Source of the DNA: Pelomyxa schiedti
Lineage: Eukaryota; Protista; Evosea
Assembly: GCA_020536535.1 (NCBI GenBank)
Contig: JAHLWZ010000820.1
Coordinates: 49,106 to 113,105, forward strand
Reading direction: 5' to 3'
DNA: 64,000 bases
Shown here: positions 54,871 through 63,773 of the stretch, in pieces
Layout of the letters: each line of letters begins with the position of its first letter
Position numbering within the stretch: the first letter of the stretch is position 1
The notes under the pieces: generated by a model
What the model saw: the letters and a program-made list of their open reading frames with translations, nothing else
The model's database searches: none
Told to the model about the DNA's origin: nothing
Program-made: the position numbers and the translations under genes

Positions 54871-56376
54871 CTACTCTATATCGGGCAATCGGGCGTTCTG
54901 TGCCTGTGCCGTCGGGAATGAAGCGGCTAGCTTGGATAGAGCCAAGATCGCCATGTGTGTGTTGCGGCCCCCTTGCCCAGGCGGGGTGCTGGGTGGCAGT
55001 GTGATGCTGACAGTAGCCTCGCCTCCAAATACAATTGCGGATTTCTTGGCTGTGCTGCTACTGTGAGTGGTGGTGGTGATCAGGGCCAGGGCCAAGTCGG
55101 CTACGTTGGTACCCGTTGGCCCGGTTTCGAGGGCTAAGGTGCTGCCGCCCACGAGCTGGAAGAAGGACGCCGAGTCGAAGCGGGCGGCGTAGTGCTGTGG
55201 GTCTGCTCCTTTGGCCGCGGATAGGGCCGGAGTTGTGAGGGAGTCTGCAATGGCCCCGGCTAGGTGTGAGTGCCCGTCCACCCCGTCTGTGGAGAAGAAC
55301 GCCAAGGTGACGCGGTCGCCCTGGGAAGAGTCCGCTACGAGTGAAACTGCTTTTACAATTCGGTCGACTTCCACGTTCGCCTCAGCGTGCATTTTGGTGC
55401 TGTTGATTTGGACCTTGTAGCCTAGCTCCTCCGCGCGCAGTGCGGCTGCAGATACCGCGGTATCATTATTTGACAGCAGCACATACTGTGACTTTTCGGG
55501 GGAGAGAAGCGGGGAGCAGACCCGCAGCGTTTCGTGATCAGTTCGCCCCACGTTCTCATCTATGTACTCCCTGACGCTATTTGGCACCGATTCCCACACG
55601 CCATACTCCAGCAGTACGGCTTTGGCATCCGCAAAGGTTGTCCCATCACAAACCGTTGGCCCGGAAGCTATCACAGAGGGGTCATCCCCCAGAACATCAG
55701 ATATGGCCAATGTGACAAAGGCACCACACCCAGAAGCAGCGATTCGCATCCTTCCGCCCTTGAGCAAGTCAATGTGCTTCCTTACAGCGTTTATCTTCGA
55801 GATTGGAATAGGGGCTCTCAGAAGCACCGCGTTTGTTTCCCTGTAGTCCCTGAGCGTGATTCTCGGGTCAGCCGGCACGGCCATCATAGCCGACCCACCA
55901 CCAGATATCAGTCCAATCACGAGTGTGTCATCACTCAGCCCCCTTAACAGATCGCACATGGCCCTGGCCCCAGTCTCGCCGTCCTCAGTTGGGTGCGGGT
56001 GGTCACTTTCTACAAGTTTGACGCGGCTCAGGCCCGGGCACAGGCAAGAATTATGGGAGCCCTCCGCCGACCCACAATTGCGTGCGTTGAAGCTGCAAAG
56101 TGACCCCCGGGGCACGTTGATGACGCCGGCCGAGATTCGCGTGGGACCCAGGACCTCGGCCAGGCTCAGTGCGCACGTGAGGGAGGCTTTACCGCCACCA
56201 ACGAGGACTACTTTGGGGTAACGATTGAGGTTGTAGGGGCGGCCGCATACGACGAGCGTGTCGCCTGATGGGCTGAGGGACACACTGCGCTTGATTACAT
56301 TATGGGGCAAAACCGCCTCGACAGTTCGCTTCACGATATCGTGCACGTCGCCCAGCACTTCGTCAGTTGTGTCCAT
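54871..56376 (-). CDS. GLYCTK: Class II (MOFRL) glycerate kinase, intronless, with permuted MOFRL segments
   Basis: GGGKA, HPHP, LISGGGSA, INAVRKH..LKGG, ISDVLGDDPSVIASGPT; then TDGVDG, AGA, TGPTGTNVADL, and only afterwards GGEATV and GGRN. Confidence 0.92.
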   Translation of the reverse strand: MDTTDEVLGDVHDIVKRTVEAVLPHNVIKRSVSLSPSGDTLVVCGRPYNLNRYPKVVLVGGGKASLTCALSLAEVLGPTRISAGVINVPRGSLCSFNARNCGSAEGSHNSCLCPGLSRVKLVESDHPHPTEDGETGARAMCDLLRGLSDDTLVIGLISGGGSAMMAVPADPRITLRDYRETNAVLLRAPIPISKINAVRKHIDLLKGGRMRIAASGCGAFVTLAISDVLGDDPSVIASGPTVCDGTTFADAKAVLLEYGVWESVPNSVREYIDENVGRTDHETLRVCSPLLSPEKSQYVLLSNNDTAVSAAALRAEELGYKVQINSTKMHAEANVEVDRIVKAVSLVADSSQGDRVTLAFFSTDGVDGHSHLAGAIADSLTTPALSAAKGADPQHYAARFDSASFFQLVGGSTLALETGPTGTNVADLALALITTTTHSSSTAKKSAIVFGGEATVSITLPPSTPPGQGGRNTHMAILALSKLAASFPTAQAQNARLPDIE

Positions 56377-56433: not shown

Positions 56434-59400
56434 TTATTCTACAAGAGTTACTTGAACTGCCAAAATTTCAGTGTTTGTTCGCGCAGAGAAGTACTTGATT
56501 GTGGCTTGTCCTGGTGGAACCTAGACCGTGATTAGGAGGGTGTGGAAATTGGGTTAAAGGGTTGGGATTCATGCCTTCTTAAGGTCTGCTTTGGTGAAGG
56601 TTACATTTCCCAGGTCACCTTGCGGCGTAACAACACCCTTGGATGTTATCTGGTAGCAAAGGCATCTACCATTGCCATCATAAATACCAATCCAGTCACT
56701 TTTGTGTGGCTGGACCGAGGATAATTCCCAGGTAACCACCAGCTCATGGTCATACCTGTGATATAATGCCATATTATACTCACATACATGAAAAATAAAA
56801 GGTGAGAGCTATGCACACTCAATGTGGTCCTGGGGGGAGCTGAGCGACAGGCAATCGGACATTGGAAGAGCAACGGGATTTGACCTCCCGGAGTGGATCA
56901 ACACCTCCCCGCCACTTCCTCCTCCGACTGATGTGTCCACGGTACATCCAAATTTGAAGTATCTGGCTTCGTATGTCTGGGTGCCTTTGACGTAGGGTAA
57001 TGGGCCTAAAATCACACTGGACTGGGAACTGTGCCGGTTTTTTTTAATGATGTACTTTCGGTTGTTCTTCTCGTTCTGTGTACGTAAGCATGCATTAACA
57101 GATAAGAGGAAGGCTCAACCTTGTTGTAAACTGCAATCCAATCCATATCGGGAACAGAACTATGAAACTCTGGCTCGTACGAAACGATGATGTTGCGATC
57201 CTGTAGAGTTGCTGTTAGGGGAACAAAATTCCCCACAAACAACTCTTCACTTCTTTGTTGAATAATTGTTTTACTCTGTAAAACTAGATTCAAATGGTAA
57301 AACCCATCTGGAAGCCCACAGAAACTGTTACAACCAGATCGGGTAACTTTCAAGGTTAGTTGCTGAGGCACACTGAAAAAGACCCACCAAATTTGTGCGC
57401 AGCGATAATTTTATCAGTGTAGTCCAGAGCAAACAAATGAATAGACACACCAAGTATTGGCAGATAGCCGTTAATTTCAAAGGAATAGGAGATTCTGCCC
57501 TCCTTCCAATGTAAAAGGTAGGTCCACAAGAAAAAGGCTTACCTCTTCCGCTGCATCCAGGAGTATCTGCCCGCCTTCTGGTGCATGTGCAGCTTTAAAC
57601 CGGTTTACTTCTATAGAAGGACGAATAACTTGAATACCTGAAATTACATCTTCTGTGGATAGGGTGACCTTGCGGCAATTCTTGAGTGAAAGCTGTTCAA
57701 CAGTCTTCAAGTAACACAAGCGAAGGACCCCTTCATTAGTGAGGTTGCACCAATCGAGGTTCAAAAATCTCAAACAAGGACAAATATCTGGTAGTACACT
57801 AACAGTTTTATCAGAAATGCTGCACTTGGAAAGGTCTAGATGTTGCAGGGAATGCCAGATCACCCCCTTCTCCAGAAAAGGTGCGTCTGTCACTCTGTAA
57901 CACAGATTGAGGAACAGAACCACAAGGCTTGCATTGCAACTCTTAGCAACTTCGACCACACCATAGTCACTTATCTTCGTGCAGCCAGAGAGGTCAAGGG
58001 CAGTTATTTGTCTACAATATTTTGCAATGGCACACAATGTAAGGTCAGTGAGTCCAACGCAGTAGGAAACCTCCAGAACAGACAAGGAAGGGCTTGCTTC
58101 CAATAATGATACAAAACCCCTATCCGTTATGCCAGTACAATTGTTCAAAGAAACAACTGTTAGCCGGTGTGCCGAAAACTTAGCAAGCTGCTGAAGGGTG
58201 TAGCTACTGACTTGAATCGATTCACTACGGTAAAAACCAATCGTTGTTATTCGGCCAAGGAGGATTGGTGCACATCGTTCCGCACCTATAAGTAGGGCTT
58301 GCTTAGCAGTTGTGTGTAAATCTTTTTCTGTGCATTGAGGAAGCAAAAAGTTGACCACTTCTGCTTGGTCCTGATCAACAGCACTGTATAAGGCTTCACT
58401 GATAAGACGTGGAACAACACTGGGGTCCTCCTGCTGTTGCTTATTCAGTATTGCACTAACGCCAACCACACTTCCAATAGACGCAGGCAGTGACACACTC
58501 ACTTCACCAACGTTCTTCCTTTGGAGGATGTGTATGACTTTCTGTTGTCCTGTTATATAGGCTTCTACGAGCGCCTGGTTTGAGTCAGCGGTTCCTATTC
58601 TATTCATTACATCCTCCAGTAGTAGCAGGTTCCCATATCTAGCAGCAGGTTCCAACAGCAAGTGGAAGATCATTGGAGGTCTGAAGATGAGTTTTGACAT
58701 CGTAGAAGGTGCAATGCTATGTATGAATTTTTGTGTTGCAGTTTCGCCAAGAAGGGTTGCTAATTCAACAACAACGTCTACATATAGATTTGCCCTCCAC
58801 TGCACTCGGGTGGAGTAGCTTCTACCGCTTTTATCCATATTCTTTTCAAACTCAACTGTACGTTGAGTCAAGTTATTAACAAACTTGGTGAGAATGATAT
58901 CGAAAACTGCATCACTTTGCTTGTTTTCTTGTGCAATATTTACAAGAATTATAAGCAAAACACGTTGTTCCAGTGCAAGACTTATCTCCGTGTTAAAGGT
59001 CTTGGCGTGCCACAGTGCTTTAGCAAGAAAATAATCTCCGATCATGTGGTGGACAAATTCTACAGTTGGGTTTGGTGATATGACATCACATTCTTCCGAG
59101 GGAGATTTAGATACCAAACCACTCTTGAAGGCAAAACTGTCACATTTCCTGCCAAGCTTCAAAGTGAATGTAGGTTGTTTGTGGAGGTAAGATTTGAGAG
59201 CAAGTTCACGGAGTCTTTCCATTGCCTCTTTCTTATGTGTGTGGAATAGATTCTGGTCCATCAAAGGATTCTTATTTTGCATCCGTTGCCAAAGCCACTC
59301 AATTAAACTTTTTAGGAACAGTTTCAAGGTTACACCAACAGGATTTTCACGTCGTAGCGATTTAATTAGCGTGCAAGCCAACTCACAGTAAAGAGGAATC

Positions 59401-62400
59401 GAGATAAAGTCGAAGAAATCGGGAATGGATTGCATTTTATCCACTGTCCAGTACTGATCCTGAGGGTTGCTATCCACGGTAGAGAAAAACTGCTTGATGT
59501 ATAGCATCACAGTCTCCATGGTCCAGCGCTCAATTCTGGTAAACATAGCCTGTGGGAAGAGAGTGTGGAGATTTCCTTTATTTCGGGAAGTGAAGATGGC
59601 CCATTCCACCCACTGGACGTTCCCGATTCTCAATGCTGACAACCAGTCTTGGATGCCAGATGATAGAGAATGTTGCTCGAGTTCATCAAACCCATCAAAT
59701 ATCCACAAAACATTGCTGGAGTTTCCTTGTATAAACCCAACAACTTCAGGGTCAGAAATTCCAATAGCTACAAGTAAATCCTGTACTTCAGTTGGAGCCA
59801 ATTGGAGTGCATTGAACTTCCCTAATTCTACCACAATCACTGCCTGGAATTGGGTCCAGTTATCCAGGCCCTGCTTTCTGCCTAATTGCTTGCACAAAGT
59901 GGACTTCCCAGAGCCACCAATTCCCTCCAATACTACCAGTCTTTTTCCTTCCTTTCTGGCCATTTCCCACAACTTATCAATAGAGATGCTATACTGAATT
60001 CCAAGAGCATGATTACTGCTGATACAAGATAACTTGATGTTGCTAATAAACATCCTCTCGAAATCAGTAGAAATTGTGCTGTTATCGCCAGCGAGAAATG
60101 ACATTGTAGAGTAGAATTGCTTATAGTGAATTCTGAGTTTTTCGCGAATGGGGGTGGCACTTGGATTTGCTGGCTGAAAACTCAATACAGGTAGTTTTAC
60201 CTTCTTGCGAGAGTGAATAGCCCACCTGATAGTCTCCACTTCTTTTTTTACTGTATCCCGTATTGTCTCAGTGACACCTCGAAGCCGAGCTTCATCATAC
60301 TCAAAGCATGCTGTGTTGATTGTAGTATTTCCCATGAAATATATGATAACTGGGTCCCCCTGTTTCCCGGGAAAGAATACTCTTACACTTTCCTTGATAT
60401 CAAACTTTGTGGACAAAAGAATTTTGTCAGCTTCTCGTACACTCACATAACCTCTATCCACTGCATTTCTCAATTCTTCACATCCACTTGCTCCACCACT
60501 CGCATCCATTACAATGACTACATCAACTCCTCTACCTACAAACGCGGGAAATGGCACGTTGAAGTCTATTCCAGCATCTCTCATATTCCCGACATCAGGA
60601 TCAGTGCTTGTAGCACCACCTAAAAAGGACTCAATTGCCGGTTTTGTGGAGTCAAGCCACGCCTCATTTGGCATCATCCTCTGCACAACATGAGGAAACA
60701 TGTTCTGAACAGTCGGGAGAACGTGAGTCCGCCAATCAAAGGCAAAGGCACTGCCGCACACAGCCATGAGATGAGGGATACTGTCATCATGGAGTTGTGA
60801 CGTGGACTTGATATACTTCCCAGATTTGTGCACTGTGAAAGGAGTGATGGTCACCCAATCCCATCCAATCTTTCCAGCTGCTTCTGGGCATTCCATGCTT
60901 TGAACAGTAGTTGGTCTGGTACTTATCGATGCAAGAGGGGGTAGTATTACACTTGGATTGTTCACTGCCTCTGAGGTGCTAGATAGTGAGCTTCCTGTTG
61001 TTTCAATAGCTGGGATAGACAACACACTTCCAGTGGGTGGAGTTCCAGTTGATATTGCCGTGGAGAAGGAATGCTGTTCGTCACAGGAAGAGGAGGTAGT
61101 TCCTGGTCGAGACTCTGTTATAGCTGTGCAAATTGGTATGGGGTATGCTCCACTTAGGAGCTTTTCGGCAGAGGCACTCAGCCTCAATGAAAAAGGATCG
61201 ACGTCATCTGGAAGAGCCTTCTTGAGCATCAAATTTGCCAAAAATTTGGCCCATGCCGTCATTACACTGCCGCCTCTCCCTTCAGATAACATAGATATTG
61301 CACCAGCTATCGTATTGAATCCAGTATCCAGAGTAAGGAGGTGAGTTAAATGAACTAGTAATCGCGGAGTCCACTTGCTACTTTTGGTTTCTTTAAGCAT
61401 GGATACCAACCCTTTGTGTGTGTGCCTTTCACTGTTATATCTACCACCCAGAACCCATGGATCATCTTCCGTTTGTCCACTGTGAAAAGGATTTCCGGAA
61501 GAGGCAATCCACTGCAATAAACACCAAGTACTGCCACTGAGTCCTGCACAATAAGTAATGCCATCAAGAAGACCAATAGAACTAAGGCCGTTTAGGAAAG
61601 CTATCATGCTAACCATTGCTCTCACACCACCACCACTTCCACATACTGCGACACAGGGCATATCACTCTCTGCAGAAGGTTCTCCAATAAATGAAGCAAG
61701 TGCAGCACGGCATACAACTTCCCTGGCTTTCACAGCTTGACTTTCTTGTTCTAGGGAATTCCTTTAAGTACGAAGTAAACGTCCAAAAACAAAAGGGAGA
61801 TGGGGAAAACAGGTTCGAAAGGAGAACGTACATGTTGATATCTTGCAGGAACGAGCTGCTAGTTCTCAGAGCATCTGCAAGGTGTTACAACGAAAATCAT
61901 TTGAAAAGGAAAAAAGCAGAAGAAGGGGAAAAAAAAAAAAGAAAAAAAAGAACCACTTTGAATACCAGCAACAGCGATACTCAACCTGCTAGGAGTTTCA
62001 TCGTTCAGTGAAGGTGACATGGACTGAGCCTTTGAGACCATATTAGACCCCAAAGCAACATCTTTCTCCTTCCCTCCAGAAATGTCATTTTCCACGGCAA
62101 TGGAGCTGCTGCTGGTACAACAATAAGGTGGCATTACAGGAGGATCACTCAGTGGTAGTTGTGGTGCAGGAGACATCGGGGCAGAAGGTGCTTCATCTGT
62201 TATTACTGAAGAAAAATCATGAAATTCCTCACTCCCACCATTCACCTGCTCTGGTTGCAATTGCTTTTCAAATTCCCGTTCCAACTCCAATTTCGATTCC
62301 TGATCGCAATTGGTCCCCGACGTCATGCACTTGTCGGCCACGTTCGGTTCAGGTGGCGGCGGGGCATCGATTGGGCACCAAGTTGGCGGAGATGGAGGCC

Positions 62401-62617
62401 TGAAATCGGGTGTCGGAATCGGCGCGTAGTCATTGGGAGCCTCTGGGGTTTTGTCCAAATTTGGGGGGACCACTTCCGCGCCTCCCCGATTTCCACTGAG
62501 AAATTCAGCCTCGGCCCCGGTATCGTTGAGAGACACCGGTGGGTCAACCTTGTTCTCGTTGGGAATTACTTCTCCGTCATTTGGCGTTACAACCCCCGGC
62601 ACCGCCCTGCAACTCAT
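56434..62617 (-). CDS. NLR-like protein: Pro-rich N-terminus, cPLA2-type phospholipase, NACHT, ankyrin-like, LRR, 2-3 SKICH-like domains
   Basis: PLA2c: SGGGVRAM, GLSGSTW, DAGIDFNVPFP, RGVDVVIVMDAS. NACHT: GIGGSGKST, WIFDGFDEL, FTSR, PLYCEL, FVHHMIGDYFLA. Cys-containing LRRs (LDLSGCTKISD). C-terminal DWIAVY and DWIGIY exons. Confidence 0.88.
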
Positions 62618-62700: not shown

Positions 62701-63773
62701 TTATAGGTTTGGGTGCCAAAACTTAGCTGTTATCATCATGTTACGGCCAGAACCAAGGCTGGCTGAAGGCCACACTTTGTCAGGAAGGTTTTTGAAAACT
62801 GATTTGAGGGAAAGTTCCCCAGAGATGTAGTAATCAGCTTCACGTCTATTCATGTCAATCAGCAGTGACACATCAGTGGAATAGTCCGCCTTTGTAACTC
62901 TACATAGTGTTGTACCCTTATAGTGGGCACAGGTATCAGGGCTGGAAATAGAATTAAACAAAAGTAAATTTGTGAAGAGGAGACCTTATGGCCCATGCAA
63001 CAACCCACAAGTCTTCATGAAGATATTTTTGAACTGCTTCCTCATCAGCCAAACCAATCCTGAGCACATTCAAGATGTCATTCCAGTGGTATCCTCCTGG
63101 AGGTTGCACCACATGTATGCTGTAAAAAACAACTTCTCTTGGCATCAGGGGCCTGTTTGTGATCACAAGTTGGTCTGACCGCTGGAAAGTGACAGCATTC
63201 TCGATAACATCTGTAACCAACACATCTCTTCCATGTACAATTGGGTCCCAGTGCAACTTCTTCCAGACATCATAGCCTGTTAAAGGAGTCAGTAACATAC
63301 ATTAGGATTGGGTTGTTGGGCAATGAACCCCACACCACAAGTTGGTCTTAAGAAAGAAAAGAAAACACACATTGTTTGAAGTGGGATTTCCATGAAAGAG
63401 GAGACCCAGGAAGTTGCTCCAGGGGAATTGTGGGAGGCAGAGCTGAGTCACACCAAGGCGACTTCTCGCACCAGACTCGCCACAGTTGCTCGTTTTGAAG
63501 GACACCATGGAAGAATCTACAAACTGCCGAAAGTGCCACACAGGACTCAAGTGGGCCCAGCCACGTGAAAACTGCATTCCAAGCAGCAAAAAACCGATCA
63601 GAAGTAAGGTCCACAGTTTCATGGGTTGTGTTGTCATTAGATGCAGAGGATACACATTCAGATGCAGGCGTTGATGGTGGGTGTGCAGGGGTCCCTGTTG
63701 CGTTGGGGATATGATCGTCAGTGAGGGATTCCCAGGAGTCAGGGATTTCATTGGGATCGTTGGACTTGGACAT
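62701..63773 (-). CDS. F-box + SPRY/B30.2-like protein
   Basis: F-box AWNAVFTWL...LSAVCRFF...NEQLWR. SPRY-like LRIGLA, VSLLIDMNRREADYYISG...FKNLPDKVWPSASL. Confidence 0.75.

Follow-up and report, generated by a model that had tools for sequence, protein, structure and literature searches.

A gene on the minus strand of a 64,000-nucleotide stretch of Pelomyxa schiedti DNA (contig JAHLWZ010000820.1, positions 49,106 to 113,105; hereafter the window, whose own numbering is used throughout) joins a predicted cytosolic phospholipase A2 (cPLA2) to a NACHT ATPase, degenerate ankyrin repeats (ANK) and leucine-rich repeats (LRRs). The deposited product of this gene, Pelo_11631 (KAH3756603.1), is labelled 'hypothetical protein'. 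Its cPLA2-NACHT-ANK-LRR architecture is apparently undescribed so far; enzyme-effector members of the NOD-like receptor (NLR) class are known as such. Analogy and sequence patterns moderately favour the reading that the protein is a ligand-gated phospholipase of the signal transduction ATPases with numerous domains (STAND) class, acting in a non-self response and convergent with the fungal patatin-NB-ARC-TPR protein PLP-1.

Domain architecture of Pelo_11631

The whole set of motifs from the lipase to the LRRs lies inside one minus-strand frame that runs for 1407 codons without a stop (61763-57543). The cPLA2 catalytic domain (PLA2c; 60201..61761) was delimited by phmmer alignment to human cPLA2-alpha (1cjy) and by the fold of an AlphaFold2 model of the main-frame protein, which has a mean predicted local distance difference test (pLDDT) of 75.8. 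The Pfam family PLA2_B reaches 21.9 bits on this frame, slightly below its cut-off of 23, and therefore the lipase call rests on the phmmer alignment (E 5e-12) and the fold match. In that alignment Arg48, Ser76 and Asp396 (codons 61622-61620, 61538-61536 and 60578-60576), which lie in the motifs GSGGGVR (61640-61620), GLSGS (61544-61530) and DAGIDFN (60578-60558), align with R200, S228 and D549, the catalytic-site residues of human cPLA2-alpha (PMC6550875). The domain carries a complete predicted cPLA2 catalytic set. Model residues 1-521 superpose on cPLA2-alpha with a Z score of 34.4 (root-mean-square deviation 2.9 Å, 352 residues aligned) and on cPLA2-delta with Z 33.6 over about 350 residues. 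A patatin identity was rejected on the same comparison, as patatin, iPLA2-beta, VipD, PlpD and CapV give Z 14-16.5 against 34 for cPLA2; the modelled fold is that of a cPLA2 catalytic domain with its cap region and not the smaller patatin fold. Pfam found a C2 domain neither in the main frame nor in the 5' exon, so that Ca2+-driven membrane targeting by that route is not expected. Within the lipase lies a Ser/Thr-rich disordered insertion (60870..61106; residues 220-298, pLDDT <50), which is full length in Pelo_11631 only and appears as a gap in the alignment of the other members of the family described below.

The NACHT module (58989..60167, from Pfam and the model) comprises a leading helix, a nucleotide-binding domain (NBD), the helical domain HD1 and a winged helix with a conserved His. 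Pfam NACHT scores 42.3 bits against a cut-off of 26.7 and NB-ARC just 17; an NB-ARC identity of the STAND ATPase was rejected. Its motifs follow in order: Walker A GIGGSGKST (59924-59898, with the Lys codon at 59906-59904), Walker B IFDGFDE (59702-59682), FTSR (59594-59583), IPLYC (59399-59385) and FVHHMIGDY (59057-59031). Residues K620, D690, R727 and H905 are invariant across seven close members, and model residues 533-954 match NLRC4 (Z 25.4), NLRP3 (Z 19.8), NOD2 (Z 17.2) and also NLRP9. Judged by these motifs and the model, the NACHT ATPase is intact.

The C-terminal half was modelled with a pLDDT of 87.7 as a helical HD2, five helix pairs and an LRR domain. The HD2-like domain (58689..58988) is all-helical in the model and bears a TRxxWR motif that is conserved family-wide. 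About five degenerate, ankyrin-like helix pairs follow (58251..58688). Alone, this region of Pelo_11631 has no significant Pfam match (Ank_2 E 0.018), and Ank_2 matches at E<=1 occur in 7 of 16 members, the best at 6.5e-5. The ankyrin identity was tested by profile search, the list of fold-search matches for the C-terminal half being filled by LRR proteins; a family profile of the region pulls ankyrin-repeat proteins from the PDB (Kidins220, NompC, ankyrins, FEM1 and DARPins) at a best E of 1.5e-12. By profile and model, these helix pairs represent ankyrin repeats in degenerate form. The chain of the main frame ends in a Cys-containing LRR domain of FBXL type (57639..58250), supported by Pfam LRR_6 (37.9 bits, cut-off 23.4), by the model, which is closest to FBXL17 (Z 25.7) and then FBXL2 (Z 25.1), and by a count of seven LxxLxLxxC repeats (58163-57675).

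With a NACHT, LRRs and a further domain in the N-terminal effector position, the predicted protein has the architecture by which an NLR is defined. That N-terminal domain is not one of the animal family's: Pfam detected no CARD, PYD, DEATH or BIR in Pelo_11631. The order cPLA2-NACHT-ANK-LRR-SKICH given by the original prediction is fully supported by Pfam, phmmer, the fold matches, the ankyrin profile and the deposited model. Among the domain matches it had expected, NACHT, LRR_6 and (on the deposited model) SKICH score above their cut-offs, PLA2_B falls just under and Ank is not significant.

Distribution of the lipase-NACHT family

A search of the 52-Mb Pelomyxa schiedti assembly revealed six loci with lipase, NACHT and LRRs, two of them in tandem, and a protein search of 1.84 billion representatives brought the lipase-NACHT core architecture to about 20 proteins in all. 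The members include three transcripts of Mastigella eilhardi and one protein from the transcriptome of the kinetoplastid Papus ankaliazontas. Another lies on an intronless, single-strand contig of 65% GC that looks kinetoplastid, and several come from metagenomes and are of unassigned origin. Catalytic and ATPase residues are conserved over the about 20 members at 23-42% identity, and all full-length members examined retain the lipase Arg, Ser and Asp. No member was identified in bacteria or archaea by the protein searches, in which several matches are of unassigned origin; no relative turned up when IMG/VR was scanned with the family alignment, and a word search with the NACHT only found no match besides Pelo_11631 itself.

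The Mastigella and Papus members are single open reading frames with lipase, NACHT, ankyrins and LRRs on one transcript. This observation bears on an artefactual origin of the architecture, by the merging of adjacent genes in annotation or by a chimeric assembly. Such an origin is hardly credible: Pelo_11631 does depend on predicted introns for its 5' exon and its SKICH tail, but the segment from PLA2 to LRR is one open frame and is repeated at five other Pelomyxa loci, which leaves a separate gene as a possibility for the SKICH tail only. Two merged genes were likewise rejected as a source of the PLA2-to-LRR core because of its single open frame.

One metagenomic member, which carries BspA-type LRRs (L029:10001-14128), lies on JGI contig Ga0606305_0018, a contig dense in ORFans and seen in 17 assemblies. 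Its neighbours are DUF5710, T5orf172, SET and HNH genes, the first of which has its closest clusters among those rich in Nucleocytoviricota. In about 60 kb of this contig no viral hallmark gene was found, and the contig is therefore described only as virus-like. For the same member, the called start lies too far downstream to include the GGGxR motif, which can be read in frame a short way ahead of it. Two further members show peculiarities: P0021 has a PH-like domain (E 4e-4) before the lipase and ends ahead of any LRR, and the frame of the paralog on G000 C951 is broken by one TAA in a very short intron-like stretch (L013:4404-4440; GTAACT...AAAG) across which the deposited model splices. Other NACHT genes of Pelomyxa (L018-L023; G000 C185, C381, C42, C424, C790 and C231) are of the NACHT-WD40 and ARM-NACHT-pentapeptide-WD40 types and branch apart from the lipase family.

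Evolutionary history of the core and of its LRRs

In a tree of PLA2 domains (quick search, midpoint root), all NACHT-fused lipases share one branch (Shimodaira-Hasegawa-like approximate likelihood ratio test 99) with 14 longer NACHT-less proteins, and this branch is separate from animal, fungal and Babeliales enzymes. In a NACHT tree, unrooted and of small sampling, the lipase family falls on one branch (89/93), where it is joined by a NACHT-kinase of Dracoamoeba and stands apart from three Ig-NACHT-LRR proteins (89/93). Both trees would allow one single fusion event but do not prove it. Paralogs of Pelomyxa and Mastigella interleave, with ortholog pairs kept between the two, and thus several copies were present in their ancestor.

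The NACHT-less proteins of the PLA2 branch are Bodo saltans CUG86623.1 (P0026; 'PLA2c domain-containing protein' in UniRef) and 13 relatives of about 1000-1270 residues. They retain the winged helix, the HD2 and the ankyrin-like parts (hhalign 98.4%, E 9e-15) and probably represent a derived, switch-less form of the family. Two of them form a tandem pair at L033:6562-12940, and P0023 bears an N-terminal C2 domain.

The Dracoamoeba protein (P0167, D. jomungandri) belongs to the same NACHT lineage, is without the lipase and has a C-terminal Tyr/Ser-Thr kinase domain. The presence of a kinase instead of the lipase implies that domains are exchangeable, and would fit a lipase that serves as an integrated decoy, that is, as a bait or ligand-binding module, the signal leaving by another route. 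This explanation is very improbable: against it stand the retention of the catalytic triplet in all full-length members examined, the position of the lipase at the effector end and the strength of the selection upon it. More specifically, among three recent Pelomyxa paralogs (three pairs) the ratio of nonsynonymous to synonymous substitution rates (dN/dS) of the lipase is 0.21-0.24, with confidence intervals up to 0.34, which indicates purifying selection and makes it the most constrained part of the protein. The corresponding values are 0.24-0.44 from NACHT to ankyrins and 0.48, 0.64 and 0.72 for the LRRs, with intervals clear of those of the lipase in two of the three pairs.

The LRRs also differ in kind. 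FBXL-type LRRs are found in the Pelomyxa, Mastigella and Papus members, ribonuclease inhibitor (RI)-like LRRs in P0016, P0067 and P0166, LRR_8 in P0015 and BspA in P0036; as far as sequence comparison goes, the core stays fixed while the LRR class is exchanged among members. In addition, the tandem pair shares a mosaic tract over the ankyrin-LRR border (p 0.004 before correction, three tests). A constrained lipase, faster LRRs and a mosaic tract form the pattern that would be expected of an NLR, short of positive selection.

Proposed function

In STAND proteins, the NACHT is kept in a closed state by repeat domains, and it binds ATP and oligomerises once a ligand allows this. By extension, the ANK-LRR arm of Pelo_11631 would keep its NACHT closed on ADP at rest. 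The LRRs may then sense a ligand, either a molecule of microbial origin or a host protein that has been disturbed, upon which exchange for ATP and oligomerisation would follow. Clustered lipases devoid of C2 could cleave phospholipids after binding to the membrane by avidity, a substitute for the Ca2+/C2 step that animal cPLA2 uses. A non-self trigger would in this manner lead to damage of a microbe-containing vacuole, to death of the infected cell or to release of a lipid alarm. The SKICH tail may be a newly integrated targeting or bait module.

In favour of such a ligand-gated role in the non-self response are the conservation of key residues, the constraint on the lipase, the faster divergence and the swapping of the LRRs, and the tandem pair with its mosaic tract. 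The fungal protein PLP-1 supplies a direct precedent, and the prokaryotes harboured by Pelomyxa live in vesicles as well as freely in its cytosol (PMC10579272). Several observations weigh against it. The six fusions are every PLA2_B match detected in the Pelomyxa genome, a count that is a lower bound since the six-frame search could miss intron-split genes. Six copies also make a small family, the orientation of lipase and NACHT relative to each other is poorly fixed in the model (predicted template modelling score 0.52), and the Bodo-type proteins have intact catalytic residues without the ATPase/NBD and the LRRs. Finally, dN/dS exceeds 1 in no region, and therefore relaxed constraint fits the values equally with diversifying selection.

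A non-immune role has to be weighed because the genome search detected no cPLA2-type genes besides the six fusions, and for the same reason the main rival is a housekeeping or signalling phospholipase under STAND regulation. Its ANK-LRR arm would read an endogenous cue and its lipase would remodel membranes or produce lipid messengers, for example in phagocytosis, digestion or encystment, with no part in defence. The ortholog pairs retained between Pelomyxa and Mastigella, the NBD-less Bodo-type proteins and the non-immune jobs of some of the structurally matched animal NLRs (NLRP2/7/14) agree with this explanation. It is nonetheless rather unlikely, as the LRR swapping, the faster LRR divergence, the mosaic tandem pair and the patchy distribution would be more usual for conflict genes, and the search that made the fusions appear to be the sole lipases of this type may have overlooked others.

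A narrower explanation is a system specialised for the control of Pelomyxa endosymbionts. Pelomyxa harbours three prokaryotic symbionts, of which one lives in vesicles (PMC10579272), and six copies of the family are present. The fusion also occurs in a kinetoplastid transcriptome and on kinetoplastid-like and other contigs; it therefore did not arise for the Pelomyxa consortium, and this specialisation is improbable. Of the function first predicted for the gene, the sensor-gated phospholipase is thus supported by the analogy with PLP-1 and by the evolutionary pattern of the family, and symbiont control is the weaker part.

Returning to the non-self response, a broader view can be put forward tentatively: the family may consist of mobile, so far unrecognised immune receptors of protists, tripartite NACHT-LRR proteins at work in single-celled eukaryotes. 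They would join a single cPLA2-NACHT-ANK core to interchangeable LRRs, destroy membranes when activated and have spread between amoebozoans and kinetoplastids, possibly via large DNA viruses, in view of the member on the virus-like contig. If the immune reading is true, Pelo_11631 would open cell-autonomous immunity in phagotrophic protists to study through a single gene, and the idea is directly testable because a single chain would have a measurable enzyme output.

Gene structure, SKICH tail and neighbouring genes

The single reading frame originally claimed for the locus holds from PLA2 through the LRRs; the segments on either side, at the 5' end and in the SKICH tail, depend on short introns. 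Nine exons make up the deposited model, and its introns measure 40-110 nt. A probable first exon starts at ATG 62617 (61966..62617) and would encode 216 residues, rich in proline and acidic residues and probably disordered; its codon-usage score is +0.15 in its own frame versus -0.25 and -0.23 in the other two. The deposited model uses an alternative start, ATG 62001, with an exon of 16 nt, and both candidate starts are in frame with the next exon. This short exon 2 (61832..61874) is bounded by GT-AG introns on both sides, according to the deposited model and the splice sites in the sequence.

Downstream of the LRRs the deposited model adds a tail (56434..57502) of three SKICH-like beta-sandwiches in five short exons with predicted junctions (57502-57389, 57347-57120, 57075-56818, 56754-56575 and 56520-56434). 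A frameshift in the tail was rejected as the model spans the break by short introns with canonical sites. Pfam SKICH scores 32.5 bits on the deposited model against a cut-off of 23.4, and single exons match weakly, below the cut-off (E 0.003 and 0.03). The tail resembles other SKICH-repeat genes of Pelomyxa (best E 4e-10; at least five other loci) and was not found in any of 17 other family members tested. Because of this distribution, the tail, if spliced on, is by sequence comparison a recent addition to the Pelo_11631 paralog. The Pelomyxa SKICH-repeat family is found at L038-L042 (G000 C626, C455, C792, C255 and C632), and one of these genes has a weak UBA match upstream (E 0.01), which recalls selective-autophagy receptors.

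The gene is flanked at less than 100 bases on each side. Upstream is an F-box-like gene (62701-63773, minus strand, E 1e-4), for which a functional link to Pelo_11631 is unsupported. Downstream is a DUF4147/MOFRL gene of glycerate-kinase type (54871-56376, minus strand), without introns and of higher GC content (about 0.55-0.58), in which the MOFRL half is matched in two stretches, suggesting a rearranged order.

Comparison with known systems

With the Group IV cPLA2 enzymes (-alpha and -delta) and fungal phospholipase B, Pelo_11631 shares the catalytic fold and the Arg, Ser and Asp residues; it differs in having no C2 domain, in its fusion to a STAND module and in its own branch of the PLA2 tree. 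With the animal NLRs (NLRC4, NAIP, NLRP3 and NOD2), which are among its nearest Atlas clusters, it shares the NACHT fold, HD1, the winged helix and the C-terminal LRRs. In contrast to these receptors, an enzyme replaces CARD, PYD or BIR, ankyrins stand between HD2 and LRRs, and the LRRs are of FBXL type.

The combination of NACHT, LRRs and an effector domain in one receptor has been regarded as invented by animals, and Yuen et al. found that the non-animal eukaryotes surveyed have NACHT just with ANK, TPR or WD40 (PMC3879445). In choanoflagellates, Richter et al. described proteins with NACHT and LRRs that have no death-fold effector (PMC6040629). Surveys of fungal NLRs list no LRRs and no PLA2 effector, and their effector catalogues contain patatin and SesB-like lipases (PMC4986451; bioRxiv 2022.03.16.484565). 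The original prediction named no described NLR with a cPLA2-family effector, and targeted full-text literature searches, with most subscription journals outside them, found no description of a cPLA2-NACHT fusion. In this family, tripartite NACHT-LRR proteins whose predicted output is an enzyme occur in free-living protists from two groups that are only distantly related.

A survey of bacterial NACHT proteins does not mention a lipase. In the bacterial CBASS (cyclic oligonucleotide-based antiphage signalling system), CapV and CapE are structural matches to the lipase at Z about 15 and, likewise, a lipase executes for a sensor system. CapV is patatin-type and is gated by a cyclic nucleotide made by a separate enzyme.

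The fungal patatin NLRs, of which PLP-1 of Neurospora crassa is an example, resemble Pelo_11631 in combining a phospholipase, a STAND ATPase and a repeat sensor in one chain. PLP-1 self-associates, and the cell death that it causes requires the patatin activity and the P-loop (PMC12881547; PMC10197012). Its modules are patatin, NB-ARC and TPR, as opposed to cPLA2, NACHT and ANK with LRR in Pelo_11631; all three come from different families, and the resemblance is therefore convergent. By analogy, Pelo_11631 would act like PLP-1 without belonging to its family. If this is true, the coupling of a STAND switch to the hydrolysis of membrane lipids arose independently in bacteria, fungi and protists, each time from different parts.

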